Origin: Macrostomum lignano
Taxonomy: Eukaryota
Direction of reading: 5' to 3'
DNA: 64,000 bases
NCBI GenBank assembly: GCA_002269645.1
Contig: NIVC01000860.1
Span: forward strand, 124,001-188,000
How positions within the stretch are numbered: position 1 is the stretch's first letter; each line of letters begins with the position of its first letter. Made by a program: the position numbers and the translations under genes. This document shows positions 559-43,383 of the stretch, piece by piece. The notes beneath the pieces were generated by a model that saw nothing but the letters and a program-made list of their open reading frames with translations, was not told where the DNA came from and made no database searches.

Positions 559-574
559 ATTTCTATTTAAAAAG

Positions 575-953: not shown

Positions 954-996
954 AGGGTACTTTTCAAGGGTACAAGACATGTAAGAGTATAAGACT

Positions 997-1101
997 AGTC
1001 CTGAAATGACACATCTAAGTCCCAAAATGACACATCTAAGTCCCAAAATGACACATCTAAGTCCCAAAACGACACATTCAAGTCCCGAAATGACACATCT
1101 T
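997..1101. repeat. 21-bp tandem repeat (AGTCCCAAAATGACACATCTA) x ~5, intergenic in the Polinton
   Basis: Directly visible; explains the MTHLSPK ORF repeats. Confidence 0.9.
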
Positions 1102-1145
1102 CTAAATGATTTATTATTTAATTTTTTTTTCAATCATAGAAAAAA

Positions 1146-1946: not shown

Positions 1947-1962
1947 AATTTGCTATTAAAAG

Positions 1963-2781
1963 ATGTCGATAAACTTTGCAGGTGAATCCATTTCTGGCAA
2001 CAGCGCTCTTACATCAGCTCAGATATCCATCCTTGACAGGCGATATATCAACAGCGACGAAAAGATCCCAGAGATCAAACTGAATAAAAACAGACTGAAA
2101 GCCCTAGAGCGCTCCATGCACCAGTTGCAAATAAACATGGAAGATCTCAGGCTTAAAGTAGCTAGGCAGAAGTTTGAAAGTGATAAGCTTTATGCGCCGT
2201 TGTTAAACGCAACTAATGAACTAAGGTCAGAAATAACTTCGATAGTCTCGCTAATCAACGGCTTGAGATCATCAGTTAATCTTCTGGGAAATTCCACTGA
2301 TAGACGGATGCGTATTCTCGAAGGAGGAGTTTTCACAAACACAGCTAAAGTAAATAATTTAGAAGAGTTCATGAACCAGTCAACAGCGTTGCATGATAGA
2401 ATTAAAGAAAACGTCGCAACCAACACAGTTAAAGTCAATAATTTAGAAGAGTTCATGACTCAGTCAACATCGTTGCATGATCGAATCAAAGAAAGACTTG
2501 AAGCATTAAAGAGAAAGGATGTATCACACAGTAGCTATCTAAACGGAATGTATAGCTCCTGGGGTAAAATACTAAGGAGGCTTGATCGTCTGGAGAGAAC
2601 ACTCAATCTTCGTGACATTGCTATTGATGAAGCAGAATCTGCTGCTCGTCCGGTCATGTCTACAGATCGAGTAGAAGGAGCTCTGGACCCCGCCGGAGTA
2701 ATCCGGCACGCTCTCAAACGTCAGCCGCCCAGCCGCTGCCTGCTGGACTCGCGATCCTCCGGCGTCACGAGAGCCGCCTAG
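1963..2781 (+). CDS. Coiled-coil protein with an internal 28-aa duplication (possible fibre/structural protein)
   Basis: 272-aa ORF after AAAAG-ATG; heptad-rich; TNT(A/V)KVNNLEEFMxQSTxLHDRIKE occurs twice (84-bp period). Confidence 0.6.
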   Translation: MSINFAGESISGNSALTSAQISILDRRYINSDEKIPEIKLNKNRLKALERSMHQLQINMEDLRLKVARQKFESDKLYAPLLNATNELRSEITSIVSLINGLRSSVNLLGNSTDRRMRILEGGVFTNTAKVNNLEEFMNQSTALHDRIKENVATNTVKVNNLEEFMTQSTSLHDRIKERLEALKRKDVSHSSYLNGMYSSWGKILRRLDRLERTLNLRDIAIDEAESAARPVMSTDRVEGALDPAGVIRHALKRQPPSRCLLDSRSSGVTRAA

Positions 2782-2872
2782 ACAACCGGCGGTGCAGATG
2801 GAATTATCAAAAAGAAAACAGATCTTTCAACCGGGTAGTTTTGTAATTTTTTTATTTTTTCTAGAGAAAAAA

Positions 2873-3598
2873 ATGGCCCAACAAAATTCTCTATACGATC
2901 AGTCTCAATACGTTGAACCTAAAATACCGACAGCACCAAACCCAATGGCACCGAATTCGAACACACAAAGCCTGAATGCACCGAATCTGAATGCACCTCA
3001 ATATGAGCAACAAAAACTCTACCCCGTCATTACTTGTAACTCTCAGCAGTTTCGACTAGTGGAGATTCAAAAAATGCGAGATGATCTTGAAAAAAATATT
3101 TTCCACAACACAAAGAAAATTAAGCGCTATGACAGCCACTGTAAATTTTTCGACTACAGCAATATGATTCTAGGATCTGTGTGTGTTCTAACTGGGTCTG
3201 CTGCAGCTGTCTCAGTGTTGCCAGTCATCACAGCCCCAATCGCAATCCCGCTCGGCTCTGCTGGTGCTGCATGTGGACTTATTTCAGCAATTACTGGAGC
3301 ATTAGCACGAAACAGGCGAAAAAAACTAAAGCAGCTACAGGAGAAGCAAGTAAAAGAGAAAGGGGTGCACACTTCAATCATAGGGTACATTTCAAGGGCA
3401 ATCGAGGATAAGTTCATTTCAGAGGATGAGTTCAAAACCATTCAGGATCTTTATGAACAATCAATTCGAATGAACTTGAACATGGTCGGTACTGATGACA
3501 TGAGTCAGCTGAGAAATGAACTCGAGAAAGTTCTTCAACATTATGCGGAAAGAAGGACAACGAGAAATTCGGTAAGGACAACGAGAAATGCACAATGA
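2873..3598 (+). CDS. Polinton/adintovirus membrane-associated protein (LYP...FRL...helical hairpin...ISEDEF family)
   Basis: Start at the A6-ATG at 2873. Motifs KLYPV, QFRLVEI, a Gly/Ala-rich hydrophobic hairpin, a basic stretch and ISRAIEDKFISEDEF. Confidence 0.65.
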   Translation: MAQQNSLYDQSQYVEPKIPTAPNPMAPNSNTQSLNAPNLNAPQYEQQKLYPVITCNSQQFRLVEIQKMRDDLEKNIFHNTKKIKRYDSHCKFFDYSNMILGSVCVLTGSAAAVSVLPVITAPIAIPLGSAGAACGLISAITGALARNRRKKLKQLQEKQVKEKGVHTSIIGYISRAIEDKFISEDEFKTIQDLYEQSIRMNLNMVGTDDMSQLRNELEKVLQHYAERRTTRNSVRTTRNAQ

Positions 3599-3602
3599 AC
3601 CC

Positions 3603-4004
3603 CTATGAAACACAGGTACGAATAATTTCCTTGTAGGTCTTTCGTGTTTTGGTCATTGCATACAAAACAGTCATGCACAGCTCACCGCAAATATCACTGC
3701 TAAGACCTTGGAGAATAAAGTCTGAGCGATAAATTTTTTTATTCTTTTTTCCCTTCAAATAATTTCTTAGCTCTTCTGGTACTGCCGTCCCATAGCTATC
3801 GAAGTAATAACACTTGTGCTTGCGATCGGGATCAATCACCCAGCAAACCCAATGAGATCCTGGCTTATCGGTGGTGTCAAAGTTCATGATGCCGCATTCC
3901 TTTCTTAGAGGAAAATCAGGCAGAGTGTCCCTCATAAATATTCCTCTAAAGTTTGGGATTTCCAGTTCGTTAGCCAAATCTTCAAGAAAGTTATTTGTCG
4001 TCAT
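3603..4004 (-). CDS. Adenain-like cysteine (maturation) protease
   Basis: Catalytic residues in the expected order: GSHW (His), YFDS (Asp), LQG (oxyanion Gln), DICG (Cys). Confidence 0.9.
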   Translation of the reverse strand: MTTNNFLEDLANELEIPNFRGIFMRDTLPDFPLRKECGIMNFDTTDKPGSHWVCWVIDPDRKHKCYYFDSYGTAVPEELRNYLKGKKNKKIYRSDFILQGLSSDICGELCMTVLYAMTKTRKTYKEIIRTCVS

Positions 4005-4089
4005 TTTTATGTTATTTTTATGAGTTTTATTAAACTTTCTCTTAAACCTAAACCCAATCTCCTAATCTCCTAAACCCAACCTCAACCTC

Positions 4090-4925
4090 CTAAACCCAAT
4101 CTCCTAAGCCTAATCTCCAATGCCCGAACGGTAGACTGTTAATATTGTCATCAAAAATGAATCTCTTGTTATCTGCACCTGACAGACCAATCTTCTTTTG
4201 CTGAATTGTGTGAATAATATGGTTTTTAGATTGTAGCTTTGAGAACTCATGTGATGTCTTTTTGTTGCAATTCAAGGCGTCTCTGTATTAAGCTTCATTA
4301 ATTTCCTTCCTAACCACACGTTTCGGAATTCCCTTTGATTTTTTGATTGGGTCTGACGACTCACATTTTATAAAATAGGACTTTGCTCTCAACCCAATAA
4401 ATTCAGTGATTATGTCACCAGCAATCTCGTCCTTCATTTTCCCAATCACTTTCTTGTTAGTGGCGTCAAACACTTGATCGCCATTCAGTGTCCTGAAAGA
4501 TTCATCATACTCAGACAAGTCAAACAAATCTTTTTGCTGCAGCATGTCCTGATAAATGTCTTCTGTTTGAATGTCCATAATAAAACTGTCTGTGTCAGTG
4601 TACAAGAGTTTCATTTTATCCTTGTACTGCTGCTTCATGCCATAGAAGAACTGGTACATCAGACGTTTTGATTCGTCGAGAACAGTGACACCTGTATAGA
4701 TCGGCTTGCGCAGCGTCACCTTGGTTTTGTAAAATATGATCACACCTAAGTAGCTATTAAAGATATGGAGTTCTTTGAATGTTGGCTTTGACATATTTGC
4801 CTGAATAACAGCAGGCTCTGATGAGGTAACAAGTTTCAGGTTTGTTCTTTTCCGCTCATTCTCAAGAGTCTTGCCATAGACAGAGTTGTTGGCTAACTTA
4901 AAGAGGTTCTTGTCAAAGTCGTTGG
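4090..4925 (-). pseudogene. polB: Protein-primed PolB, C-terminal part (motifs B and C) with an in-frame TAA at 4290-4288
   Basis: Reading on from the TSD gives TN-DFDKNLFKLANNSVYGKTLEN (motif B), then YTDTDS (motif C) and KSKGI. After the TAA the same frame continues YRDALNCN...DNKRFIFDDNINSLPFGHW, a typical Polinton PolB tail. Confidence 0.92.
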
Positions 4926-5239
4926 TGTGACATTGTGGTGATATGCTAGTGTATTTTTATTATTGCAATATTATGCTTTGTGCATTCTTAGTTAGTTAGT
5001 ATTTGCGTGCGCGCTGATTGGCTAGTGTGTTTCAGTGCATGTGCACTGCGTCGGGTTGTTTGCGTTTTACGCGTGGCTAGCATGGTGGGGTCTGAGCAGT
5101 CAGGCTAACCACCCTCTTTAGTCCTAGGGTTGATGAATAAGAATAAACAAGTCATATAAGAGCCCAGTTGTGTGTACTGGCTCTCCACGTTCAACTTTCC
5201 TACGCATTCACTACAAGCCTTTAGCTTCAATATATTACA
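4926..5239 (+). repeat. 5' LTR (314 bp)
   Basis: Matches 9264-9577 except T4939 vs C9277 by eye comparison. Confidence 0.97.
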
Positions 5240-8200
5240 ATGGCGACGAGCTCCGCGCTGGGTGGAATTCCAATACTAACTGCCAATACTAACATTGAGG
5301 TCTGGCTGGAACGGCTCGACCATTACTTTACCTGCAAGGAGGTAAAGGAAGAAGCTAAAGTGGCCACACTCGTCACTGCCATCGGTGAGGAGGCATATAC
5401 CGTGTTGAGAAACTTGTGTCTACCTGCCAAGGTCTCCGACAAGTCTCTGGCCCAGTTGACCAAGATTCTGGAGGACCACTACGCTCCAAAGCCGTCCGAG
5501 TTGGCAGCCAGATTTCGGTTCCAAAGACGCCTGCAGCAGCCTGGCGAGAGCCTTGCCGAGTTCGTTGCCAGCCTGAAGGCCTTGTCAAGTCACTGCAATT
5601 TCAGTGCTTCCCCGTGTGAGCACTGTCACTTCGGCGGCACTCTAGACGAGCGACTGCGAGACCAGCTGGTTTTCGGCCTGCACAGCGATGCCTACCGAGC
5701 GAAGCTGCTGGAGGAGAAAAATCCCACCTTCAACTCGCTGCAGGAGAGAGTTCTATCCCTCGAGGCAGTGGAGCGGTCATCATCGGAGATGGCGCAGAAG
5801 TCAGCAGCACAAGTAGCCCAGCTGCGCGCTCACCAGCTGAATAAGCGCCAAGGACCCAAGCCAGCGCTCGAAGGTTCGCAGCAGCGCAAGGGCGGTGGCA
5901 ACAACAGCAGAAGCGGAGTCGGCAGCAGCGGCAACACCGGCAGTGGCACCTGTGCAAGCTGCGGCGGTGCTCACAGTCGCCAGCAGTGTAAGCTGCGAGA
6001 CGCTAAATGCCACGCGTGCGGAAAGACGGGCCATATTCGCAAGGTCTGTCGCTCAGCCAAGCTGCATTTTCTACAAGAAGCGACACCGACACCACCACCG
6101 GAAGCCTCCGCGCAGCTGCCGATTTTTGCCGTGCAGCCGGCTGGTGGCAACGCGGGTCCGACGGTGCAGCTGCAAGTCAATGGCCAGCCATGCCGGTTCG
6201 TCATCGATACGGGCTCCGCCGTCACTCTGATGCCCGAGTTTCTGCAGCTCATGCTTCTACCGCGGCTCTCCATGTCACCGTCCGTTGCTGTCCTACGCAC
6301 CTTCACCGACGAGCAGTTCCGCCCTCTCGGCCAAGCGTTGGTCTCCGTTCAGCAAGATGGTCAGCAGCTGCAGTTGCCCCTGCTGATCGTCAAGCACGGC
6401 GACACGGCCCTGCTCGGTCGCGACTGGCTGGCCAAGCTGCGGCTAGACTGGCCGAGCATCATGGCGCAGGTTCACGCCGTCCACGACTCCGAAGACATCG
6501 GCAGCATCGTCAAGGAGTTCGCACCAGTCTTCGAGGACGGCCTAGGCGAGTTCCGGCACGGCCAGGTGCGGCTTCAAGTCTCCGAGGACGCTCAGCCCAG
6601 GTTCTTCAAGCCGCGGCCGGTCCCCTACGCGCTGCGCGAGCGCGTCGACGCCGAACTGCAGCGCATGGAGTCCAGTGGCATCATAACCGCCGTGAAGCAC
6701 AGCGACTGGGCTGCGCCGATCGTGCCGGTCGTCAAGAAGGACGGCAGCGTTCGGATTTGCGGAGACTACAAGCTGACATACAACGCGGCGAGCAAGCCGG
6801 AGCACTACCCGCTGCCCCGCATCGAGGACCTCTTCGCCAAGCTCGGCGGCGGCTGCAAGTGGACCAAGCTCGATCTGTCCAACGCCTTCTTGCAGCTTCC
6901 TCTGGCCGACGACAGCAAGGCGTTTCTCACTATCAACACGCCCAGAGGCCTCTTCCAGGTCAATCGCCTCCCATTCGGCATAACGAGCGCCAGCGCGATC
7001 TTTCAACGCACCCTGGACACCCTGCTGGGAGACCTGGATGCCGTCCAAGTCTTCGTCGATGACATTCTGGTCACCGGCAGCACCCTGCAACAGCACAAGA
7101 GGAACCTGGCGCTGGTCCTGCGGCGCTTGAAGGACGCCGGCCTGCGGCTCAACAAAGAGAAATGCAAATTCTTCGAAGACTCTGTTGAGTACCTCGGCCA
7201 TCGGATCGACGCCAGCGGACTCAAGCCGCTGCCGGACCGGGTCGCCGCCGTCCAGGACGCGCCAGCACCCAAGGACGTCAGCCAGCTGCGCTCGTTTCTG
7301 GGCATGCTAGCGCAGTACTGCAAGTTCCTGCCCAACTTGTCTACCGTCCTGGCGCCGCTCCACCAGCTCTTGGCCAAGAACACCCGCTGGTCATGGGGGC
7401 CACCGCAGCAACAGGCATTTGCAGAGGCCAAGCGGCTGCTGCTCGAGTCACCAATTCTCGTGCACTACAATCCGAATCTGCCGCTGCGATTAGAGTGCGA
7501 CGCCTCTCCCTACGGCCTGGGGGTCGTCTTGACGCACCGCATCGACGACAAGGACTGCGCGGTCGCCTTCGCTAGCCGCAGCCTAACAGCAGCGCAGCGC
7601 GGCTACTCCCAGCTGGACAAGGAGGCGCTGGCCATCATGTTTGGTCTGCACCGGTTTCACCAGTTCCTCTATGGCCGGCGGTTCACCATCGTCACCGACC
7701 ATCTGCCGCTGCTGGGTCTGCTGGGCGAGCGCAAGGGCATTCCGGCACACGCGGCCGCCCGGATGCAGCGCTGGGCCATTCGGCTGTCGAGCTACGACTA
7801 CACGCTGGAGTTCCGGCCGACCGAAAAGCATGCCAACTGCGACTCGCTCTCGCGGCTGCCGCTGCCGCACCTGTTCGAGGAGGAGCCGGCCGTCAACTCG
7901 CTGCTGCTCGACGAGGGCTCCGGATCGGCCATCACGGCGCTGGCGGTGGCGCGGCACACTAGGACAGACGTCTCACTCGGTCGGGTGCTTCGCTGCTTGC
8001 AGACCGGCGCGCCCATCGGCGACGACCTGAGCGACTTCGCCCGGCGGCAGTCGGAGCTGTCAGTCGACCAAGACTGTGTCCTGTGGGGCGCAAGGGTCGT
8101 TGTGCCTACAGCGCTGCGTCAACGCGTGATCCAAGAGCTACATCAGGCGCATCCCGGCATCAGCAGAATGCGCGCCCTGGCTCGCAGCTACGTGTGGTGG

Positions 8201-9202
8201 CCCGGCCTCGACGGCGACCTGGAAGCTGCGGCCAAGTCCTGCCGCACCTGTCAGCTCAACCAGCCCGACCCGCCCAAGGCGCCGGTGCAACCGTGGCCTC
8301 TGCCATCCGAACCGTGGGAGCGCCTGCACATCGACTTTGCCGGTCCGGTCGACGGTCATACGTACCTGGTGGTAGTCGATGCTCATAGCAAGTGGCCGGA
8401 GGTCCAGCGGATGCGCGGTACAACGTCGGCGGCCACCATCGCGGCTCTGCGGGAGATGTTCGCGCGCCAAGGCATTCCGCGCACCCTGGTGTCCGACAAC
8501 GGGCCGCAGTTCGCCTCCGCCGAGTTCGCCGAGTTTACCCGGGCCAACGGCATTCGTCACGTGTTCTCGGCGCCGTTTCATCCCGCCACCAACGGCCAGG
8601 CCGAGAGGTTTGTGCAAGTCCTGAAGCGACATCTGCTCAAGAGCGGCCACTCTGACGTCGAGCTTCAGCGACTGCTGCTCAGCTACCGCAACACCCCACA
8701 CAGCATCAGCGGCGCAGCCCCGAGTCAGCTGCTCATCGGCCGTCGGCTTCGCTGCCGTCTGGACCTCCTGGCACCGTCGCTGGCTGACGACGTCCAACGG
8801 CGGCAAGAGCGGCAGCTGCAGGGACGCAGACCAGCGCGCGAGTTTCAGCCGGGTGATCACGTCCTCCTCCGCGACTACAGCGCCGGCGCGAGAGCCGGCG
8901 ACACGCCACGCTGGGCTGAGGGTGTCGTCACGGGCGCCGGCAGCCGCAACTACACGGTTGACTCGGAGCGAGGCCAGCACTTCCGGCACGCTGATCAGCT
9001 GGTGGCAGCCCGCGCTGACTCCGCCGACACCGTCCATTCGCCGCCTGCTACGGATGACGGCGCCGCCCGAGTGACAGCGGCGTGCAAAGCGCTGACGCCG
9101 CAGCCGTCGCCGACACGGCCTGCGGGGCGTCATCCGGCACTGACGACGAGCATGCGAGCGGCGTGCGACACGAGCCGGGCACTACACGGCGGTACCCACT
9201 GA
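5240..9202 (+). CDS. Gag-Pol polyprotein (Gag with two Zn knuckles, PR, RT, RNase H, IN)
   Basis: CASCGGAHSRQQC and CHACGKTGHIRKVC; IDTGS protease; FVDD RT; DAS...DKEAL...TDH RNase H; HHCC and HIDF...SDNG...QAER integrase; Gypsy domain order. Confidence 0.97.
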   Translation: MATSSALGGIPILTANTNIEVWLERLDHYFTCKEVKEEAKVATLVTAIGEEAYTVLRNLCLPAKVSDKSLAQLTKILEDHYAPKPSELAARFRFQRRLQQPGESLAEFVASLKALSSHCNFSASPCEHCHFGGTLDERLRDQLVFGLHSDAYRAKLLEEKNPTFNSLQERVLSLEAVERSSSEMAQKSAAQVAQLRAHQLNKRQGPKPALEGSQQRKGGGNNSRSGVGSSGNTGSGTCASCGGAHSRQQCKLRDAKCHACGKTGHIRKVCRSAKLHFLQEATPTPPPEASAQLPIFAVQPAGGNAGPTVQLQVNGQPCRFVIDTGSAVTLMPEFLQLMLLPRLSMSPSVAVLRTFTDEQFRPLGQALVSVQQDGQQLQLPLLIVKHGDTALLGRDWLAKLRLDWPSIMAQVHAVHDSEDIGSIVKEFAPVFEDGLGEFRHGQVRLQVSEDAQPRFFKPRPVPYALRERVDAELQRMESSGIITAVKHSDWAAPIVPVVKKDGSVRICGDYKLTYNAASKPEHYPLPRIEDLFAKLGGGCKWTKLDLSNAFLQLPLADDSKAFLTINTPRGLFQVNRLPFGITSASAIFQRTLDTLLGDLDAVQVFVDDILVTGSTLQQHKRNLALVLRRLKDAGLRLNKEKCKFFEDSVEYLGHRIDASGLKPLPDRVAAVQDAPAPKDVSQLRSFLGMLAQYCKFLPNLSTVLAPLHQLLAKNTRWSWGPPQQQAFAEAKRLLLESPILVHYNPNLPLRLECDASPYGLGVVLTHRIDDKDCAVAFASRSLTAAQRGYSQLDKEALAIMFGLHRFHQFLYGRRFTIVTDHLPLLGLLGERKGIPAHAAARMQRWAIRLSSYDYTLEFRPTEKHANCDSLSRLPLPHLFEEEPAVNSLLLDEGSGSAITALAVARHTRTDVSLGRVLRCLQTGAPIGDDLSDFARRQSELSVDQDCVLWGARVVVPTALRQRVIQELHQAHPGISRMRALARSYVWWPGLDGDLEAAAKSCRTCQLNQPDPPKAPVQPWPLPSEPWERLHIDFAGPVDGHTYLVVVDAHSKWPEVQRMRGTTSAATIAALREMFARQGIPRTLVSDNGPQFASAEFAEFTRANGIRHVFSAPFHPATNGQAERFVQVLKRHLLKSGHSDVELQRLLLSYRNTPHSISGAAPSQLLIGRRLRCRLDLLAPSLADDVQRRQERQLQGRRPAREFQPGDHVLLRDYSAGARAGDTPRWAEGVVTGAGSRNYTVDSERGQHFRHADQLVAARADSADTVHSPPATDDGAARVTAACKALTPQPSPTRPAGRHPALTTSMRAACDTSRALHGGTH
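5241..5250 (+). promoter_or_regulatory. Primer-binding site TGGCGACGAG, complementary to the 3' end of tRNA-Ser(GCU)-type tRNAs
   Basis: One base after the LTR; its reverse complement is CTCGTCGCCA; it overlaps the gag ATG. Confidence 0.8.
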
Positions 9203-9250
9203 GGGTTCGAGGCCCACCTCAGAGACTTCAGCTGTGAAGGGGAGAACTGA

Positions 9251-9263
9251 CTCAGGGGGGAAG
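9251..9263 (+). promoter_or_regulatory. Polypurine tract
   Basis: CTCAGGGGGGAAG immediately before the 3' LTR. Confidence 0.85.
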
Positions 9264-9577
9264 TGTGACATTGTGGCGATATGCTAGTGTATTTTTATTA
9301 TTGCAATATTATGCTTTGTGCATTCTTAGTTAGTTAGTATTTGCGTGCGCGCTGATTGGCTAGTGTGTTTCAGTGCATGTGCACTGCGTCGGGTTGTTTG
9401 CGTTTTACGCGTGGCTAGCATGGTGGGGTCTGAGCAGTCAGGCTAACCACCCTCTTTAGTCCTAGGGTTGATGAATAAGAATAAACAAGTCATATAAGAG
9501 CCCAGTTGTGTGTACTGGCTCTCCACGTTCAACTTTCCTACGCATTCACTACAAGCCTTTAGCTTCAATATATTACA
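9264..9577 (+). repeat. 3' LTR (314 bp)
   Basis: Direct repeat of 4926-5239, followed by the TSD GTTGG. Confidence 0.97.
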
Positions 9578-12500
9578 GTTGGTTGCTTTGGTCCTAAACT
9601 GGGTATTCTTATCAATGTAGGGTTTCATCCACGCTTCCTCTGTAAATGTAAGAGCCCGGTGAACTTTAGTGACCCTGCAACCAAGTGAGATAAAATACTG
9701 AAGCAGTTTGTAATGGATTTTGTAACGTGTCTTGTTGTTTAGATTCTGTGTTAGCTTCTCTGTATGTTCTTTTTCTGTTCCTGACAGGTGCCAAGTTCCA
9801 TTATTATCATTGGGAGTTTCGATTATTTTCGGGCACTTGATGTTCTCTGGGAAGGGTGGAAAGTCAGAGAAATAGTCGTGAAGCTCTGGTGGAATGTAAA
9901 CATCAACCTCATAAATGGCAGCCAATGAAAAGTCCCACTTTAGTTCTGATGAGGGTAGCCATCGAAAATCTCTAACTGGAAGATCTTGACTCATCGCCCA
10001 CCCGTAGAGATTATTAGCGTCCAAGTAAGTAATGTAGTTTGAGGGCTGCTCCTTATTGTAAGATTCAATGTAGGGATTGTTTGCTTTTGCATACCTGTTA
10101 ACGCAAATTGAGATCCCCCCTCGTTTTGACGATTCGACAAAATTGTACATGTCAATGTCTGTAAGAAGTTCAATGTACCAATCTGGATCTTGATCCCATT
10201 TCATTTTAAGCAAAGATTCCCAGCTAGTGGCAGGCAGAGACACATAATGTGCTGGATCGAGGCCATATGCTGTGTACCAGGTGTATCTGAAGGTTTCAAA
10301 CACATCAGCCAGCAGAAACACATCTGTGTAGAGGTAAAGCAGGTGATACTGGAAGAAGTTTTGACAATTAAAGTAATTATAGACATGCTTCGCGTGCTCA
10401 TAGTCTTTGTCAGAGATTCCAGAGTCTGTTAGCTTTGAAAAGAACTTCTCCTGTGGTGGTAAACCTTCTTCAAATACGTGATACCCAGTAATATTTTCAT
10501 AGGGATATAAGCCTTTGGTTCTCAGGAGTTTAAATGATTCATCACTGTTGTAAATTTTACTTGCAAACATCTTTGTATATGTACATTGTTCATCTTTTAG
10601 ATTCTTGCTTAGTTCGTTTAGACTGGCAGCTAGAAATTGATATGAATCCTTCAGTCTTATTTTACCTGTACCCGAATTATCCTGTTTAATATCAACACAC
10701 TTAAACTTCTCCTTGTTCTCTGCGATGCAATCAAGGTGTATGTCTGGAATCATGCCGATTTTTTCAACTATTAAATGCATGTCATAGTTCTTTGCGTTGT
10801 GACAAAATATCGTTAGATCATGAATGTTCGATTTTAGCTTTAGATTACAGGTGTTATGCGCTGCACCTCTAAATTTCCCAGTAAAGTGGCAGTGGTCCCT
10901 AACGGTCGGGTTTTTAATATTAGTGCAAGTTAAATGTTTCCTGCAGATGTGGCAATGAGTTGCTGATAGGAAATTGCTTTCATCCTCCTCAGACATACTT
11001 ATTGGAACAGGTTGAAGGGTGCTAATTACTCTTTGCAACTCTAACATTCTGGCAATAAACTGCTCCACACACTGCTCTCCAAAGAAATAATTATACTCAA
11101 CAAGTCCTTTTGTAGTAATAAAGGCATATGCTACTGAGTTGGGGACATGTTTTTGAGTTTGAGTTTGTTTTTGAGTATGAGTTTGTTTTTGAGTTAATTT
11201 TTGAGTTCCTGGCATGATTGAGCATTCGAAATCAGCATATACAACAAATGGGAGCTTCTCCATCTTGTGATAGTTCTTAAACCGGAGATACTTCTCTTCA
11301 GCTGAAGGAAGAGAGCAGTTTGTTGGGTGATCCTCGCATGATAATTCATGCTCTGTTAGTTTTTCAAAGCGCTCAGGCCCACTGTAATGCTTAAGGCACA
11401 AGCGGCAGATGGCAACAGCCTCGTGATGATTATTCAACTGCTTGTGAATGAGTCTTGAAAGATCTTTAATCCAAACATAGTGAGCCTCCTCTAGTAAATT
11501 ACCAATCACTAGAAGATCCACTTCAGTCCGCCTTTTCCCCTCAGGATCTGAAACGTCTTTGCTACATCTGACCGGTTGAACTTTCTCAGTTTTTTCACTC
11601 CATTCAAAGACTGTGATTCTAATTTTGTTATTAAACACTTCTTCTAGCTTTGGGATCTGAGAGATCGCCAAGCCTCCTTTGTCAAACCTGATTCCCTTCT
11701 TTTCGCATTCGATGAGATAGTACTTGAAATAATTTTGATAATTTGAGGTTCTTTCGGGGTGGTGAGGGACACTATCATAAAGAAGTGCAGAAAGAACTGC
11801 CCATAGAGCACAGCAATTGTCTTTATTTTTAACATTTATGCAAGCTTTTTTGCCGGCTAGCTTATGCGGGAGCTCTATATAAGAGGAGGCTTTAAGTGGG
11901 TCATATTTCATGACCATGACAGTCGCTCTTTGAATCCCTCCCACGACCCATCCAGAACCTCTGGATGTAAACGCTTCAATTTTCTTAGTGACATCTTGAA
12001 GGAAAGGATCTAGTGTGTCTGTAGGGGTGAATGGCTTTGCCTTTGTTGTCATGTAATACTCGAGATGCTCAGTGGGTTTTGCAGGCATATAAAACGCAAT
12101 CTTTAATGATATCTGTAGTTTAAAGGTCTTGCGTGTTTTGAGTGTGTGATCAACAACTGATTGGATGCTGTCTTTATAGTCGTAGATGTTTGCGGTGGTA
12201 CCGTTGGTGTCGTTAATTGGGATTGTGTACTCGATGTAATGTTCTGTAAACTTCCTCTGTGCAAAATTAATCTCTTCAGTGGCAAGCTCCGACTCTTTTA
12301 AATGGATTAATTGCTCTAATTTCTCTTGTTCCTGCTTATTTTGTGGGTACTTTGCTTTTTCACCAGTAAGAGTTTCATATTTGTTAACTAAGTTGCGACT
12401 CCTCTCTTGGTGTTCCTTTGCAGGATTTTGCATAGGCGCATATTGGTTGGATTCTAATTGATTGATGATTTCCAACTGTTTTTCATAGCTTCCCAGGTGA

Positions 12501-12622
12501 CCAGGGTCGGTGTTAAACTTTTGTTTACATGCTTCTCTTAGTAAATTACTTTTGTCTTGAAATGAGACGCCTTTTGAAAAATGTTTGTTGACTAAATCTT
12601 TTGCTGGATTAGCTTTTGGCAT
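9578..12622 (-). pseudogene. polB: Protein-primed PolB, N-terminal part (terminal-protein-like region, exonuclease, endonuclease VII-like insert, motif A), interrupted by the Gypsy element
   Basis: YADFE (Exo I), HNAKNYD (Exo II), YLYTD (Exo III), YLDANNLYG (motif A); the frame is open for about 1015 codons up to the TSD. Confidence 0.95.
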
Positions 12623-12746
12623 TTTTTTCTCTAAAATAAAAAAAATTTTTGAGGGTGACCACCCTGATAGAAAAGTTGAACTGTTTCTACATCCTATAAG
12701 TAGCGCTAGGTTTATGAAGCTGGATAAAGTGGGGTTTTAAACCTCA

Positions 12747-13202
12747 TCACATCCGCATTATTGTAAACCCAGCATTGTGCAGTGTCATGATAGCTTTGAC
12801 AATGTCAGACTTGCTTATAGAATTTTCATGCTCACAATCATCACGATCATAACAATCGGGGCAGCCCTCTCCTGCCTTAATTGTTATACCTTTGTCTCTT
12901 GCAATCTTTTGCAATTCAAGCTGGTGGGCTCTATCATTACCAGCTTTAACAGCAGTTGCTACACCTCCAGCTACACCACCTGCGGCACTTACAGCGCCTG
13001 CAATAGTCGGGATAAGAGCTGCTAATGGTAGGATTCCTCCTAACTTTTCATCTGTGATGCTGTGTCTTTGCTCATTACACTGAACTATTTGCTGCACGGG
13101 ATCGACTTTTACTTTGGCACCTTTTATTGATATAAGACCTGGTCTCTTTGATTCAATGATTTTATTGAGTTTATTGATGGTTCTGGTTTCAATCTTTGTC
13201 AT
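12747..13202 (-). CDS. Adenovirus pX/mu-like core protein precursor
   Basis: KLGG-ILPLAALIPTIAGAVSAAGGVAGG closely recalls adenovirus pX MRGG-ILPLLIPLIAAAIGAVPGIA. Confidence 0.7.
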   Translation of the reverse strand: MTKIETRTINKLNKIIESKRPGLISIKGAKVKVDPVQQIVQCNEQRHSITDEKLGGILPLAALIPTIAGAVSAAGGVAGGVATAVKAGNDRAHQLELQKIARDKGITIKAGEGCPDCYDRDDCEHENSISKSDIVKAIMTLHNAGFTIMRM

Positions 13203-13219
13203 TTTTTTATTTTAATATT

Positions 13220-14257
13220 TTAATTAATTTCTGTGTCAGCTGGTATCACTAGGAGTTCAGCTCTAGTGAATGACCGCGTGGGGGATTTAGGGTTAAAGGC
13301 TTGAGATAAAAAGTAATAGTCACCGGAGTCGGAGGTAAAATGTCTGTCTATTTTATGTACATCAAGGCTGAAGTATGGATCTGTAGCTCTTCTTTTGGTG
13401 TCTTTCTCTAGCTCTCCAGGTAGATATAAAAAGCGTAGAAACTCAGAGTTTGTCAGTATGTATGGTGATTCAACTCCTGGAAGCTTAGGGTAGTTCGAGG
13501 TGTGTTTTGTGTTGTGTGTGTTGTGTGGGGTTGTAGTGTTGTTGTCTGTTCTTTGAGTTGCCTTAAGTTCGACAGTGTCTTGTTTAATTGCATGGGATGG
13601 TTTCAATCCAGTCATGCGCGTGACTTCATTGTTCAGTTGCTCTATAACAGTGGGGAGTCTTTCTGTCCACTTGGTATAGTACTGCCCCGCACTCAGTTTG
13701 AGTTCTTGCGCTGTCTGCTTAGTGAATAGTCTCTTGGCTAGAGTTAGATTGAATCTTTCCACAAAAGCCTGGTCTCTGTGCAAGTTTGTTCTGCCATAGC
13801 GAATCTCTGTGTTTTTCTTTTCCATAAGGGATTTCACTACACCCATGAATTCCTTACCCGGGTCGGTCATAAAGATTTGGGGGTATGTGAGCGGAGAGTT
13901 TTTATAAATATCTTGCAGTGCGCTGGCAACAACCTCTGACTTCTTCGTCTTGAGTGGGCGAGCTTCCTTATATCTGGAAGCAATGTCAATAATTGTAAGA
14001 GCATACTTGTAGCCTGAGTCATTGGGGAGAAACAAAAGATCTGCTTGGTGCGCTTCATTAGGTTTATAGATGCTAAAGTGAGGTCTTGTAAATTTTACTG
14101 GTGGGAAATAGACTTGAAAGACAGCCTGCTTAGAGAGCCACTTTTCTACTGTAGCTTTTGGTTCCTTACTCAGCTCCATGAGTTTACTAACGGCATTTTT
14201 GCCTACAAAGAATCCTTTGTCGCTGTAGTAGAGTTTTTTAAGTTTCTGATCTGTCAT
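13220..14257 (-). CDS. Polinton retroviral-like (rve, DDE) integrase
   Basis: HQADL...IIDIASR...TDPGKEF...QAFVERFN; intact 345-aa ORF. Confidence 0.93.
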   Translation of the reverse strand: MTDQKLKKLYYSDKGFFVGKNAVSKLMELSKEPKATVEKWLSKQAVFQVYFPPVKFTRPHFSIYKPNEAHQADLLFLPNDSGYKYALTIIDIASRYKEARPLKTKKSEVVASALQDIYKNSPLTYPQIFMTDPGKEFMGVVKSLMEKKNTEIRYGRTNLHRDQAFVERFNLTLAKRLFTKQTAQELKLSAGQYYTKWTERLPTVIEQLNNEVTRMTGLKPSHAIKQDTVELKATQRTDNNTTTPHNTHNTKHTSNYPKLPGVESPYILTNSEFLRFLYLPGELEKDTKRRATDPYFSLDVHKIDRHFTSDSGDYYFLSQAFNPKSPTRSFTRAELLVIPADTEIN

Positions 14258-14287
14258 TTATTTAAAAAGAAAATTTTAAATAAAATA

Positions 14288-14788
14288 ATGCAGCGCTCTG
14301 GTGGTAAGTTAGATTCACATGGACTGATAGAAAAGCTTCCTCATCCGAACAAAGGCTGGACACTTCCCGGCTATAAATATTGCGGGCCTTTGAATCCACT
14401 TGAAATACAGCTAGATAAAAACAATAATCCACATCCTGGGCATGAGCCTGTGAATGAGCTAGACTCTGTCTGCATGTGGCATGACGTTAAATATAGAGAT
14501 TTTCCTGAGGAGAAGAATCGTTGGGACAAAGAAATGCTTAAGAGACTAGACAATATAGGGGCTTCAAGCGGATTTCGCGAGTCTATTGCTAGGAAATTAG
14601 TCAATGCGGTTATTTTTGGTAAGTCTAAGTTGGGGTTGGGGGTGTACGCCGAGGGCGGGTGTTTGGGGAGAGAGGGCGGGTGTGCGGAAGGAGAGGGCGG
14701 AGGCTTGGGAGTAGGGTTTATTTTGTGCGCTCCTAACAAGAAATTGGGAAGACTGCTGAAAGAGCTGGGGGTAGAGAGGGGCGCTTGA
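14288..14788 (+). CDS. Parvovirus VP1u-type phospholipase A2 protein
   Basis: Start at AAAATA-ATG 14288. Ca-binding loop LPGYKYCGPLN and catalytic segment PVNELDSVCMWHDVKY (His-Asp). Confidence 0.85.
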   Translation: MQRSGGKLDSHGLIEKLPHPNKGWTLPGYKYCGPLNPLEIQLDKNNNPHPGHEPVNELDSVCMWHDVKYRDFPEEKNRWDKEMLKRLDNIGASSGFRESIARKLVNAVIFGKSKLGLGVYAEGGCLGREGGCAEGEGGGLGVGFILCAPNKKLGRLLKELGVERGA

Positions 14789-23520: not shown

Positions 23521-24547
23521 CTATAGACAGTGCTTTCTGCATACGGCTATATCAAGTTAATTGTCTGTCAGCTATACCAAACATTCGACCGCACCCAGAG
23601 TACTTCAAATAGACCCAGAAGCGCTGCGAGACACTTGGCCCACTCACTACATTCGTGCAAAAAGTACAGTAGAAAAACGAAAAACAAGTTTCGGACAAAT
23701 TGAGTCCCCTCTGCTAGCTTGAGCATAGCTATTCATACAGATTGTGTACAGCTCCTGCACACGTACGTTTTTTAAACTCAACAGGGCTTTTATTTAAGAT
23801 ATGCTTTTCTTGAATAATGGCTCGTGTACTGGCTTCTTGTCTCTGTTATACGAGTATATCACTGCTGTCACAGATGCACTTTCGTTAACCCTCCGTCTGT
23901 TTTTTCTATTATTATTTTACCGTCCCTATGGGCACAGGGAGATCATTATAAAGCAGCTTATGCGCAAGTTACCCTGATAAAACGAGAGTCTCCTATAGTC
24001 AGCAGCCGAGAAACATCTGCGAACAAAAGTGATAGAAATGGCAGCAGCTGGTCGACAGAGCAGCTACGAAAATAACCAGGTAATTAACTATATAACCACC
24101 TCGTTTCTAACTGACTTTGTACAACTTAGCTCTATAGAGGTCAGCAAAATCCACATACGGGCCCACAAAGCCTCTCTCTATCGGGCCGTCGGGTCCTTCG
24201 AAACTTCACAATTAGCAATCTGAACCCTCAAAGGCTTCTCTCTTTTCTTAGCTCACATATCTCTAATCTCTCCCTTCTCCCTTCTCTCCTTTCTTTCCCT
24301 TCTCTCCTCCTCTCTCCTCTCCTACGCTATCTCTCATCTCATCCTTTATCTCCCCACCTCTCATTTCTACTATTTTCTTTTCTCTATTTTCGTTTTTAAA
24401 AGTCTACGAGTAGTCGTAAGTGTTCAACTGACTTGGCTCGAACTTATAAAATACCCGAGAAAGATAGATGAAAATGGTCTGTACGAGTACAAAGCTTTAT
24501 CTCTGTATCCTACAAGTAGTTTCTGTGGTCGTTCGCAATTAAAAGAA

Positions 24548-26179
24548 ATGGTTTTCTTCATATCTTCGCAGGAAACCGCTAGGCTGCTGGACTCAGAGAG
24601 TTCGGAGTCAGCTGAAGATCAGCCAGTCGAGGTCAGTCCTATTTGCAAGCTAAAATGCCTCGTCCTTGGCCTGGTCATTGTCGTCATCGGGGTCGTTGCA
24701 TCACTTAACGAAGGCACGGTGACCTACCAGGAGAAACACAATAAAAGTAGGCTCAACAAAAGTAGCTGGCGATGGTACAACAGGGACAACCCAAACCTTT
24801 GGGTCTGCTGGGCCATCAAGTGCATTCAGTTGTTGATGGGGATCATCTCAGTTGTCTTCTTGCTTAAAGAAGTAATGAAAAAAGGATACTTATCAAATTT
24901 GCCTCGATTTCAAGAACTACCAAAGAAATTTTCCAACTATCCAACCACAATGTTTATTTCAATATTCATCATATTTGCCATCCTTGGCGTAGTCTGTGCC
25001 ATTGCTGAGACAATTAGCGAGCTTATCAATTCAATTGATCCTAATGTATACGAGATGCTCCCGTATGCGGATGTGCTGCGCTGTGTCCTGCTGTTTGCAT
25101 TCATACTACTGCAGGCTTGGTTCTTTACTAAAAACAATCGGATGTGTCTAAATTGGAAGCTGGACGGAGCCTGGGTAGCCATGACAATTATACTGGCTAC
25201 CAATGTGTCATTGTGGTTCTTTTACATCTCCTATGAAATTTCCAAGATAGCCGGGGAAAACCACGCTTGCGATACCAATGAAACAACGAGGAAGAAACTT
25301 CACGAGAGCTTTGATATGATAGTCGAGATCATGTTCCCGTTTCTGATTGAATTCTTTCTCATGGGAGCCATACTGGCTGCCAGTTTCTTGTCTAACATTG
25401 GGCGGCTGAGCTGTATTTTAAACTAGCTGCAGCAGAGTGTCCCCTACCTGACTAACGGCGCTGAAATGAATTTCAAAGACCATCTTCGTAAACACCTGCA
25501 CAGCCTGCTCTTAGGAATGGCGTTGGCCGGTTCAGCTATCCTCATCTCCTTGATGATGAAACTGTTCACATGCGAGAGAGAACCGTGGCACCTCCTGACA
25601 CTCTACATTCTGGCCGTACTATTCGTGGCCGGATCGGTATGCTGCGTTGTGCTGCTGCGCGCCTTCAGGGTAGACGGGGAGGCTAAAGTTGAGACAAAGA
25701 CTCGAACTGCGGCAGACAGGCTGATGCTCTGGTGCTGTGTTGTGGCCCTAGTAGTAGATGAACTGAACCGGTTATGGGGCTTGTTTCAGAGTGACAAGCC
25801 GCTGTACAATGCTATTGGCACCGGTTTGGTTATTGTGTTTGACATCGTACAGAGCGTGCTGCAAGTGTACGTGCTTGAGTGCATCCTGCTGAGGCTGGAA
25901 GTGCGGGTAGGCGGCAGTCCCCGTTCTCAGGGCGGCAGTATTGGCGCTCGCTTACTCACCGTTCTCATGGTGATCAATGCGCTTGAGTGGCTGGTCAGCG
26001 CCGTAGCCTTCAGTCTGTTTTTCTTCAACAGCAACAGCCAAAGAAGTGCAGCCACTATGGCTCTGGTAGTGATTAGCGCACCTCTGCAGGTGTTCTTCCG
26101 GTTTCATTCGGTTGGCTGCATCCATGAATTTCGGGAGCACTGTCGCGAGGTCGACTCGACGATCCCAGCATCCCGATAG
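24548..26179 (+). CDS. Otopetrin-like proton channel, intronless, interrupted by a single in-frame TAG (25424-25426)
   Basis: LLQAW, LATNVSLW, FPFLIEFFL...SNIG, HSLLLG, QSVLQ, VINALEW and PLQVFFRFHS match otopetrin motifs; the two ORFs are in frame and 13 codons apart. Confidence 0.8.
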
Positions 26180-32455: not shown

Positions 32456-32768
32456 CAAGGACGTCGCCATGGATTTTATGGTAGGGGGGGGGGACAAAGC
32501 CGAGAATTCTACATGTACATGTACATGACTAAATTTCTATATGTAAATTATTTCCGAATCGGCGTTTTCATCAATAATTTTGGCGCCGCATGCAGGCACT
32601 CATTTTAGCGTCGCAGGCACTCATTTTGGCGCTGCAGGCACTCATTTTAGCGCCGCAGGCACTCATTTTGGTGTTGCAGGCGCTATGTTATGTCGCCCTG
32701 AACCAAAATTATTGACTTTCCATAACGGGTCAACAAGGTGTGGTTGGGGGACAAAGCATTGGCATCGC
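32456..32768 (+). mobile_element. Truncated copy of the hAT MITE at 42625-43383 (about 5 internal 21-bp units)
   Basis: Shares CGTCGCCATGGATTTTATGG, the GCAGGCACTCATTTTAGCGCC units and GGGGACAAAGCATTGGCAT; right TIR missing. Confidence 0.8.
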
Positions 32769-37425: not shown

Positions 37426-37884
37426 ACAGGCTGAGCTTTGATCATGCGACTAAAAGACACTTTTAGCGGAACGTTGATCGAGCCGTGCATGAAGTTCGTT
37501 GGAACTTGTCAAGTGCGCGCCCGATTCTTCAAGAGATCCAATGATAACTGAGAGTTTCATAGCCATGAAGTGATAAGTTTTCACAATTTGTGACACAGTC
37601 AGTGACCTTTTCTAGTTGGTCTCGTTGTATTGACACTAGAATCGAAATCGACATTAGCACACTTTATTGCCCACTATACCATCTGAACTATTTGCTTGTT
37701 CCACTTCCATGACGACTTTTTATCAATTTGGAAATGTGAAACCAAGCAATCAATAATCTCTGTTGAACTCTTGCTGATCGTCTTGCCCTGATCGTATGTT
37801 TAATCTGCTTGATGGTCGACGCCATTGTATATATTCCATAATTTCTAGACCAGGAGCTACCCTACTTCACTAGTGACAATGTTA

Positions 37885-38130
37885 GCTGATCAAGTTCCAA
37901 AAACATTAGCTGATCAAGTCCCAAAACATTAGCTGATGAAGTCCCAAAACATTAGCTGATCAAGTTCCAAAAACATTAGCTGATCAAGTTCCCAAAACAT
38001 TAGCTGATCAAGTTCCAAAAACATTAGCTGATCAAGTCCCAAAAACATTAGCTTTAGCTGATCAAGTCCCAAAAACATTAGCTGATCAAGTCCCAAAACA
38101 TTAGCTGATCAAGTCCCAAAAACATTAGCG
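37885..38130. repeat. 24-25-bp tandem repeat (TTAGCTGATCAAGTCCCAAAAACA) x ~10
   Basis: Directly visible. Confidence 0.9.
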
Positions 38131-38657
38131 TATTATGCGAGCGTATTTCGGAGAGATTTTGGTTTGGTTTTAGCCCGTAATACAAAAATTTTTGTCGGTA
38201 TTAATCTTAATCCTTGCCTGTTTTTCCATCGTAAAAAATTCTCGTGAACAAACTTATTTATCATATCGCTGGACCTCGTCACTACGTCTGTTTTAAAAGT
38301 CAGCTTCGAGCTATCAGTGACATTTAAAATGACTCTAATTGTGTTATGCCACAATCAATTTTAAATATTTGACGTATTTTTATCAACTCACTGATGTCAC
38401 CTGGTGTTGGTTTGTTTTGCCGCATTCTTCCATTGCTACTGTGTGTTGAAGTATAGCTCGTAGGTTGCATATTGACGCTCATACAATTTTTGAAAAAGGC
38501 CACTAGAGAGTAAAAAAACAGTGACTGACTTCTTGTAATTTTTTTCTAGCTCGTACTTAGATTTGAGTAGCTGTGCTTTCGTAATATTTTGTTTGGTTTC
38601 AAAGAATTTAAAACGCACTTTGAAATCATCACACTCTTCCAGCAGCTGAGACAAATC

Positions 38658-39859
38658 ATAGCGACTCGTCGACAGCAACAGCTCCCGCTGCTGCTGCTGC
38701 TGCTGCTACTGCTACTGACTGCTTCAGCGGTTCTCGCCGACTCCAAAGAACTGGCACTTCAACGGTATCTTGACAGTCGCGCCGTCAGCCGAAACATCTG
38801 GCCTCTGAAAGTTGACAGTCCTGAGGCCGCGTGGTCCCTGGTCGTCGACTTCGCGCCCCTAGCCCTGGTGCAGTTGGACTCCACATCCCAGTCGCTCAAA
38901 CTGCTCGCCTCTCTGCAAATCGACTGGCCCGATGAGGTCAACGTGTGGGACGTCGGCCGCCATCCGCTACGACTGACGCATCGACGACCATCGGAGCTCT
39001 GGCACCCGACGGTGTTGCTGCAGAATGCTCTGGACAGTTCGAGCGGCCTGCTGAAACCGCAGGGCTCGATCTTGCTGCGTCACCAGGCTAACAATAAAAC
39101 CCTAGGAAGCATGAAAATCCGTCAGGTCTTCGATGTTGGCTGTTTGGCCGATATTCGAAAGTTCCCTCACGACACTCTGTACTGCGATCTGGTCTTCGTG
39201 GTGATGGAGCGCCGCCCAACGCCGAAGCTATTGCACTTCGCCCGGTGCCAACATCTGGTTACGTTGCTCACAGCGAGTGGCAGCTCATGAATGTCAGCAC
39301 GCGAACAAAGGTTGAGCTGTTTCCGGGTTACCTGGAGCAGGTCCCAGCCCTCACTGTTGCACTGCAGTTTCAGCGGAACGGAGATTTCTATCAGCGAAAC
39401 CTGGTGCTGCCAGTCTGCGTACTGACGGTCCTGCACGTCGTGGTGTTCGCGGTGCCCGCCCAGCCAAGCCGCAAGCTGACGCTGGGAAGCAGCATCCTGC
39501 TCGGCTTCATTCTCTACCTGTTGCTGTTTGAGCAGATCATACCAAAGTCGCAGCAGCTACCATCGATTTTCTTTGCCTTCCACGCCGCTTTGATTTTCTC
39601 TGTCGCGACCATCGTGTTGGCGGCCGGGGTGCTGATCATGTACCACAAGAGGGGCCGGGGACCGCCGAGGTGCCTGCAGATGCTGCTGGTTCGCCTGCTT
39701 GGCAGCTGCGTGTTGCTGCCGGCTGAGCGGACGCTGAGCAGCTCGTCGCGACCGCGGCAGCTGTGGCGGGGGGCCGCCAAGGTCGCCGACCGAGCCCTGA
39801 CCATCGTTGCAGTTGTGGTGGCAGCCATCTGCGTTGCGAGTTTCTCGCGATATTCCTAG
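38658..39859 (+). pseudogene. Second Cys-loop channel subunit, intronless in view, with a 1-nt frameshift near 39240 and no in-frame ATG
   Basis: Poly-Leu signal peptide, LWHP loop A, Cys loop CLADIRKFPHDTLYC and M1-M4. One extra C in GCCCGG (~39240) joins ORFs 38589 and 39245. ATA at 38658 sits where a start codon is expected. Confidence 0.8.
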
Positions 39860-42624: not shown

Positions 42625-43383
42625 CCGGGGCGTCGCCATGGATTTTATGGTGGGGGACAAAGCCGAAAATCCTACATGTAGCTCGTACATGACTAAATTT
42701 CTACATGTAAATTATTTCCGAATCAGCGTTGTCATCGATCATTCTAGCGCAGGTGCCATTTTGGCGCCGCAGGCACTCATTTTAGTGCCCCAGGCACTCA
42801 TTTTGGCGCCGCAGGCTCTCATTTTAGCAATGCAGGCACTTATTTTAGCGCCGCAGGCACTCATTTTAGCACCGCAGGCACTCATTTTAGCACCGCAGGC
42901 ACTCATTTTAGCGTCGCAGGCACTCAATTTAGCGTCGCAGGCACTCATTTTAGCGCCACTGGCACTCATTTTGGCGCCACAGGCACTCATTTTAGCGCCA
43001 CGGGCACTCATTTTAGCGCCACAGGCACTCATTTTGGCGCCACAGGCACTCATTTCAGCGCCACAGGCACTCATTTTAGCGCCGCGGGCACTCATTTTAG
43101 CGCCACAGGCACTCATTTTGGCGCCGCGGGCACTCATTTTAGCACCGCGGGCACTCATTTTAGCGCCGCAGGCAGTCATTTTAGCGCCGCAGGCAGTAAT
43201 TTTAGCGCCGCAAGCACTATGTTTTGTCGATCTAAAGCAAAAATTTTGATTTCCATAACGGGTTAATCAGGTGGGGTTGGGGGGGGGACGGGACAAAGCA
43301 TTGGCATGTCCCCCACATAGCTTTTACTGGGGGGGGGGGGGGTATGTCCCCACTGCCCCCCCCACCCGGTGGCGACGCCCCTG
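42625..43383 (+). mobile_element. hAT MITE with 14-bp TIRs, 8-bp TSD and an internal 21-bp array (~22 units)
   Basis: CCGGGGCGTCGCCA...TGGCGACGCCCCTG; TSD TGCATAGA at 42617-42624 and 43384-43391. Confidence 0.92.

Follow-up and report, generated by a model that had tools for sequence, protein, structure and literature searches.

The stretch of DNA analysed here, referred to throughout as the window, comprises 64,000 nucleotides of the genome of Macrostomum lignano (inbred line DV1), that is, positions 124001-188000 of scaffold NIVC01000860.1 in assembly GCA_002269645.1 (Mlig_3_7). It carries an otopetrin gene whose reading frame is broken by a single in-frame TAG codon. We conclude that in this interrupted copy, itself a redundant homeologue, we probably see a nonsense allele of very recent origin, or a nascent pseudogene, and that we are most likely dealing with an ordinary event in a known gene family, not with a new two-piece channel. 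A preliminary description of the window, made from its sequence, had offered three explanations for the interruption: a naturally split two-subunit channel, regulated stop-codon readthrough, and a very young null allele. Only the last of these fits what we find, namely an intact sister copy, a TAG that is private to the window copy, and no indel. The case thus amounts to one more nonsense hit in a redundant copy of a recently polyploid genome or, failing that, to a residual error in an assembly that is hard to polish.

The interrupted otopetrin gene and its sister copies

When the otopetrin sequence, read through the stop, is used as a protein query, it returns two clusters only, both from M. 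lignano. The first (P0001; PAA65414.1, BOX15_Mlig010166g1, UniRef100_A0A267EWP5) is an uninterrupted protein of 549 residues, 98% identical to the window copy, which we call otopetrin B. The second (P0002; PAA75826.1, BOX15_Mlig015311g2) is a tandem paralogue, 82% identical, which we call otopetrin A; it lies ~5-8 kb upstream of the window start at locus L002 of NIVC01000860.1, the 3' part of which is 100% identical to window positions 1-5392. The P0001 gene itself resides on a separate scaffold, NIVC01001655.1 (locus L001), which is collinear with window positions 17286-38203 at ~98% identity, and which also carries an otopetrin A copy (P0003). The order of genes on that scaffold, namely otopetrin A, a TBP-like gene, otopetrin B and then Cys-loop receptor-like genes, is the same as on the window scaffold. 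Judged by sequence and gene order, the window otopetrin belongs to a tandem A-B pair as its B copy, and is the sister of BOX15_Mlig010166g1. In the analyses reported below we compare four copies: window B, L001-B (P0001), L001-A (P0003) and L002-A (P0002).

Three subgenomes (S, L1 and L2) make up the neopolyploid genome of line DV1; their SNP (single-nucleotide polymorphism) divergence is 1.9-2.4%, and they are kept as separate scaffolds in Mlig_3_7 (PMC10733133). The collinear identity of ~98% between the window and NIVC01001655.1 agrees with this published range. Since the assembly retains ~2%-diverged subgenomes as separate scaffolds, we regard the window copy and P0001 as homeologues, or else as divergent haplotypes of the large chromosome. 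Apart from their close protein identity, the window copy and BOX15_Mlig010166g1, which is deposited as a 'hypothetical protein', have in common a two-exon structure and the same neighbours (a tandem otopetrin A, the TBP-like gene and two Cys-loop receptor-like genes). They differ in that BOX15_Mlig010166g1 is uninterrupted, reading AAA-CAG at the site of the stop, and in that its scaffold is without the ~20 kb of mobile-element insertions that lie between A and B on the window scaffold.

The structure of the window gene is given in Table 1. The preliminary description had reported two open reading frames (ORFs) in the same frame, one of 292 residues and one of 237 residues; it had also reported that the TAG is followed by CTG-CAG, that the next ATG occurs 13 codons downstream, and that no other lesion is present. 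All of this is confirmed: the first ORF runs 24548..25426 and ends in the TAG at 25424-25426, the second occupies 25466..26179, there is no other stop across 544 codons, and exon 2 has no indel relative to the intact sister. Two further details require revision. The ATG at 24548, taken as the gene start, lies inside an intron, so that the first 8 codons of the 292-residue ORF (MVFFISSQ) are intron sequence; comparison with P0001 places the real start at ATG 24038, and the true N-terminal product is therefore 298 residues long. Likewise, the ATG at 25466, described as fresh, encodes a methionine (M313) that is already present in the uninterrupted P0001.

The two ORFs are not a chance pair, since they match consecutive parts of the Pfam Otopetrin profile. 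Nor is the TAG an artefact of translation with the wrong code: the normal terminator of the same gene is the TAG at 26177-26179, and the L001 copy stops at the same position. Thus TAG is a real stop in M. lignano, and an alternative genetic code is ruled out. The spliced 298-residue product, like the 292- and 237-residue products of the bare ORFs, has no exact match in the public protein collection, and the window copy is therefore without a deposited protein product.

Scored separately against the Pfam profile (PF03189), the two window ORFs reach 22.9 bits and 25.1 bits (profile positions in Table 1), each under the cut-off of 27.8 bits, whereas the intact P0001 scores 44.5 bits and the A copy P0003 scores 50.1 bits. 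We also modelled P0001 with AlphaFold2, on the basis of an alignment of 16 sequences, there being few relatives that could be detected. The model (pLDDT, the predicted local distance difference test, 74.7; pTM, the predicted template-modelling score, 0.76) contains 12 long helices. In a Foldseek search with this model, the top 12 matches in the PDB are OTOP1, OTOP2, OTOP3 and CeOTOP8, with E-values of 6.5e-8 to 1.9e-3 and target-normalised TM-scores of 0.61-0.78; the next matches, which are MFS transporters, lie near 0.2. The identification of the gene as an otopetrin, as first proposed, is upheld both by the full-length sister, which passes the Pfam cut-off, and by these 12 best fold matches, all of them OTOPs.

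The model also allows us to locate the stop with respect to the predicted transmembrane helices (TM). TM1-TM6 occupy residues 37-289 (TM6, 253-289), and are followed by a short helix at 292-301, by a low-confidence segment at 303-313, and then by TM7-TM12, which begin at 315 and span 315-543. The stop falls at residue 299, that is, between the end of TM6 (289) and Met 313, with TM7 starting at 315; its predicted position in the linker between the N domain and the C domain is thus as the preliminary description had it. Both domains are joined in one polypeptide in the three sister copies, and are separated by the TAG in the window copy.

Zebrafish Otop1 possesses a Q-N-Y triad in each of its two domains (Q174/N204/Y268 and Q433/N528/Y571), together with conserved residues E267 and H574 (bioRxiv 10.1101/542308). 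The corresponding TM6 motif of the M. lignano protein, MFPFLIEFFL, aligns to MFPFNIEYSL of OTOP3, and its TM12 motif, VFFRFHSVG, aligns to VFYRMHSVG. The Glu of TM6 and the His of TM12, both conserved, are kept, as LIE(274)F and FFRFH(526)S, and both columns are >=90% conserved in our alignment. The Q-N-Y triads, however, are incomplete: the Gln and Asn are retained, and Phe stands in place of Tyr in both triads, in each of the four M. lignano copies. The earlier observation that the conserved Tyr residues are replaced by Phe (LIEF, FFRFH) is therefore correct, but the altered gating that had been read from it cannot be linked to the stop, since the replacements are common to all four copies and are shared with many invertebrate relatives; among 15 aligned sequences, Phe occupies the TM6 position in 6/15 and the TM12 position in 13/15. 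As far as these alignments indicate, the Tyr-to-Phe replacement characterises the lineage and has nothing to do with the stop, and it gives no ground for excluding the gene from the otopetrins.

Compared with OTOP1-3 and C. elegans OTOP8, whose structures have been solved (PDB 6NF4, 6NF6, 6O84, 8UG4-8UGA), the M. lignano protein is alike in its predicted 12 TM, arranged as two 6-TM domains, and in keeping the TM6 Glu, the TM12 His, and the Gln and Asn of both triads. It differs in its low identity to them (only 10-15%), in the Phe at both triad Tyr positions, and, in the case of the window copy, in being cut in the TM6-TM7 linker. A literature search on otopetrins in flatworms, and by the identifiers of these genes, returned nothing relevant.

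The lesion and its age

The stop arises from two adjacent bases. A four-copy codon table reads AAC-TAG in the window, and AAA-CAG in L001-B, L001-A and L002-A. Correspondingly, the 17-mer that contains CAG, TTTTAAAACAGCTGCAG, is found in each of the other three copies, and the 17-mer that contains TAG, TTTTAAACTAGCTGCAG, in the window only. That is, the close paralogues are intact and lack the disabling lesion, with CAG in 3/3 of them; by the refuting condition that the preliminary description had itself set, this speaks against a natural split and against regulated readthrough, as the homeologue and both tandem A copies read AAA-CAG. The relatives in the alignment (n=15) are single polypeptides through the linker, bar one short fragment. 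When exon 2 of the window B copy is aligned with that of L001-B, we count 26 substitutions (1.62%) and zero indels.

In order to place the lesion in time, we examined site patterns over all four copies, with A serving as the outgroup. The A copies differ from the B copies at 102 sites; 19 sites are private to the window copy, and 4 are private to L001-B. SNPs private to the window copy include T at 25378 and G at 25519, on either side of the stop. The two A copies differ from one another by 0.29% only. In the codon table, the 18 changes derived in the window copy consist of 13 synonymous and 5 non-synonymous changes, the Lys-to-Asn and Gln-to-stop changes included; one further possible non-synonymous change follows from the nucleotide site-pattern count of 19, and we therefore give the non-synonymous count as 5-6. 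The window branch, for which 370 sites count as synonymous and 1235 as non-synonymous, has a ratio of non-synonymous to synonymous rates (dN/dS, or omega) of ~0.12-0.14, and neutrality is rejected (binomial P ~1e-5 to 3e-5).

Such a low omega indicates purifying selection over essentially the whole separate history of the window copy. Because the copy has been constrained throughout that history, the stop must be very recent, or tolerated, or not real. The signs of relaxed constraint, namely dN/dS near 1 and further lesions, were not found on the window branch, a result that fits only a very recent lesion or an artefact. We consider the lesion to be young, since there is no indel, no second stop, and an excess of synonymous over non-synonymous changes among the private sites.

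The sequence of events that we propose is as follows. An adjacent two-base change would have occurred in the window copy alone, converting AAA-CAG to AAC-TAG at codons 298-299. The resulting loss would be buffered by the intact copy of the same gene and by the intact A paralogues that remain in the three-subgenome M. lignano. Translation would then end after 298 residues, yielding a fragment that consists of the N domain only. This fragment would presumably be non-functional, as the OTOP structures suggest that the conserved intrasubunit interface needs TM12; the truncated product would thus be expected to be inactive, and the C half of the window copy would probably not be translated. The scheme supposes, as we infer, that the animals themselves carry the TAG and that it is no mere feature of the assembly.

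In several respects this resembles the pseudogenisation of homeologues that follows whole-genome duplication: one of several ~2%-diverged copies is disabled, the others are intact, and the adjacent gene on the window scaffold is also frameshifted (see below). It differs in that there is no visible relaxation of constraint, and in that the lesion may be an allele private to DV1 instead of a fixed loss. If the interpretation is right, the window offers a dated view of how gene loss sets in within the M. lignano subgenomes, at a stage when the lesion is present and constraint is not yet visibly relaxed. The intact homeologue, for its part, although deposited only as a 'hypothetical protein', is a divergent otopetrin whose triad Tyr are both replaced by Phe, and a candidate proton channel. 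The interruption would bear on the mechanism of otopetrins only if the split proved to be conserved or expressed.

Alternative explanations

Several points weigh against a recent nonsense mutation, and we consider them together with the alternatives on which they bear. The first alternative, which we judge unlikely, is an artefact of assembly or polishing. Under this explanation the animals have AAA-CAG, or some other sense sequence, and the TAG would be confined to the consensus sequence of Mlig_3_7. The complete lack of relaxed selection is equally expected from an assembly error in a functional gene, and the substitution pattern of the window copy does resemble that of a functional gene. 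Mlig_3_7 was assembled with Canu from PacBio RS reads, and Illumina and RNA-seq reads were then used to polish it with Pilon (PMC5730564). Since 93% of short-read pairs map to more than one locus (PMC10733133), and several 98%-identical copies of the region exist, such polishing is unreliable. Furthermore, the difference of CT from AC can also be written as a homopolymer contraction (A4 to A3) plus an inserted T, which is like the noise of a long-read consensus, and the lesion in the neighbouring gene is itself a homopolymer deletion, GGG to GG. On the other hand, errors in a long-read consensus are mostly single indels, and not paired changes that preserve the frame. Polishing drew on the Illumina and RNA-seq reads just mentioned, and mis-polishing from a paralogue would bring in CAG, not a TAG that is seen in no other copy.

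A gene model from another source also bears on this question. P0006 (UniParc UPI0007A2EB49) is a chimeric model of 3027 residues that maps to window ~17244-39835, and that fuses otopetrin A, transposon-like ORFs, otopetrin B minus TM2-TM6, and the two Cys-loop genes. Its B part is of the window haplotype, since the C half has five diagnostic residues and the two sequences agree at every one of them, and it avoids exactly the stretch in question: it leaves out window 24719-25432 (714 nt), with the skip ending directly after TAG-CTG-CAG. We reject this 714-nt 'intron' as true splicing, because it would remove TM2-TM6, and regard it as a detour of the predictor. Read as a predictor bypassing a frame break, the skip gives indirect support for the lesion from outside Mlig_3_7, and so argues against an artefact of that assembly. 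The support is weakened in that P0006 probably comes from the same PacBio reads and is not fully independent; the model appears to derive from the older ML2 assembly. Its haplotypes are mixed, the B part being of the window type, the second Cys-loop gene of the L001 type, and the A part exact to neither, so that P0006 represents either a third subgenome copy or haplotype, or a collapsed older consensus. Exact look-ups of the 292-, 237- and 298-residue products and of P0006 in public assemblies returned no independent contig or transcript.

The second alternative is that the lesion is much older: the TAG would be ancestral in otopetrin B, and L001-B would have regained its sense codon through gene conversion, with the neighbouring A paralogue as donor. 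In favour of this speaks the pattern of divergence. The window branch is ~5 times longer than its sister, with 19 versus 4 private changes (P ~0.003), and the synonymous divergence between the B copies is 4.1%, about three times the 1.0-1.5% seen in flanking non-coding sequence. Within 25032-25446, moreover, L001-B is almost identical to the A copies, differing at 2 sites, and the window copy differs from them at 10. These patterns suggest that gene conversion may have taken place among the tandem or homeologous otopetrin copies (A/B), and because the branch asymmetry and the synonymous excess point in that direction, polarisation by the outgroup is not fully secure. The uniqueness of the TAG to the window copy is unaffected by this weakened polarisation. 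Nevertheless, we regard an old pseudogene as highly improbable. The window-private sites interleave with the sites that distinguish B from A, which would require many short conversion patches, and a ratio of 13 synonymous to 5-6 non-synonymous changes, with no indels, is unexpected for a gene that has long been dead.

A third alternative, to which we give very little credence, is that the interruption is functional. The stop could be read through; the 298-residue N domain and the 237-residue C domain could be made separately and assemble; or a cryptic in-frame intron could remove the stop. Several features speak for it. According to the model, the stop lies exactly in the disordered interdomain linker, with an in-frame Met two residues before TM7, and both halves are free of lesions and apparently constrained. 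The TAG, in addition, has a C at +4, and a C in that position makes for a comparatively leaky stop context. Yet the stop is conserved in 0/3 of the sister copies and in no aligned relative, and no relative is split at the linker, which counts against both the split channel and the regulated readthrough of the preliminary description. Met 25466 predates the stop, being present in the intact P0001, and was thus not acquired with the split. The sequence after the stop fits neither of two known readthrough motifs, UAG-CARYYA and UGA-CUAG. We likewise found no stimulatory RNA structure in the 100 nt after the stop: these fold less stably than shuffled sequences do (-17.2 kcal/mol versus a shuffle mean of -22.1, z = +1.52).

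Removal of the stop by an intron fares no better. Ten in-frame GT...AG pairs span the stop, for example 25413-25478 (66 nt) and 25390-25437 (48 nt), but the candidate donors are weak (GTATTT, GTCTAA), and the identical splice sites are retained unspliced in P0001, whose annotation derives from transcriptome assembly (PMC5730564).

There remains the analogy with engineered split channels of other families, which can work. In one such report (PMC6013512), Kv11.1 was cut between modules, and channel function stayed reconstitutable after cuts in such a position. The otopetrin case is like these in that the cut falls in a flexible linker between structural modules. It is different in that the constructs described there are laboratory products with two expression units, and in that here the split is not conserved. 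A literature search for split otopetrins found no paper. Least credible of all, in our view, is that the TAG copy makes two half-channels, the 298-residue N half and a 237-residue C half begun at Met 25466, or undergoes regulated readthrough. Were this true, it would be the first otopetrin to be split or read through in nature, and would test directly whether proton conduction depends on a covalent link between the 6-TM domains.

Scaffold context

Table 1. Coordinates (window numbering) of the interrupted otopetrin gene and of the mobile-element ORFs upstream of it.
Feature	Position	Strand	Remarks
Exon 1, 14 codons, MAAAGRQSSYENNQ	24038..24079	+	True start ATG 24038; corresponds to MAAAGRRSSYENNQ, with which P0001, the intact homeologue, begins; donor GTAATT at 24080
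Intron, 492 nt, GT...AG	24080..24571	+	P0001 runs ...ENNQ straight into ETARLL; acceptor ...cgcag
Exon 2, N domain (TM1-TM6) and first linker residues	24572..25423	+	Pfam Otopetrin profile positions 7-110
Adjacent two-base difference, CT versus AC in the other three copies	25423..25424	+	AAA-CAG (Lys-Gln) to AAC-TAG (Asn-stop)
Premature TAG, codon 299 of the spliced gene	25424..25426	+	Predicted short helix after TM6, in the TM6-TM7 linker
Thirteen linker codons, from the stop to the next in-frame ATG	25427..25465	+	Matches low-confidence model segment 303-313
Remainder of exon 2, open 237-codon frame, C domain (TM7-TM12)	25466..26179	+	Pfam Otopetrin profile positions 248-434
Pox_A32-like packaging ATPase ORF	1146-1943	+	
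Ty3/gypsy pol ORF, complete-looking	5240-9199	+	Protease, reverse transcriptase, RNase H and integrase; GC ~0.6; nested in the Maverick/Polinton-like element
1058-residue ORF	9443-12619	-	Weak Endonuclease VII-like match
Adeno_PX-like small ORF	12747-13199	-	
rve integrase	13220-14254	-	

The otopetrin stop is not the only disabling lesion on the window scaffold. The second Cys-loop receptor-like gene, which resembles genes of neurotransmitter-gated channels and lies at window 38646-39856 (+), lacks one nucleotide after 39205 when compared with its homeologue on NIVC01001655.1, a deletion by which GGG becomes GG (GATGGGAGC to GATGGAGC). Its deposited product is truncated (P0005, 211 residues, versus 405 residues in the intact homeologue P0004). 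This frameshift lies within 15 kb of the otopetrin stop. Two other neighbours are intact: the TBP-like gene is 100% identical between the scaffolds, and the first Cys-loop gene differs at 1/380 residues. Disabling lesions are thus found in 2/5 of the shared genes on the window scaffold, and in 0 on NIVC01001655.1, a skew that a degenerating haplotype would explain, as would errors left in the consensus.

Upstream of the otopetrin gene, window 1-14300 appears to be occupied by a Maverick/Polinton-like DNA element, whose ORFs are listed in Table 1 along with the nested retroelement. The 1058-residue ORF had no match among PDB sequences. The whole Maverick/Polinton-like block is missing between otopetrin A and B on the homeologous scaffold. 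Short tandem-repeat arrays at window 32587-32690, 37882-38129 and 42628-43218 produce ladders of staggered, overlapping matches to that scaffold, as is typical of the repeat-rich M. lignano genome. Finally, a 349-residue ORF at window 55455-56501 (+) carries an N-terminal RING finger, matched by several RING Pfam models (E ~1e-6), and from its sequence looks like a single-exon E3 ligase-like gene.

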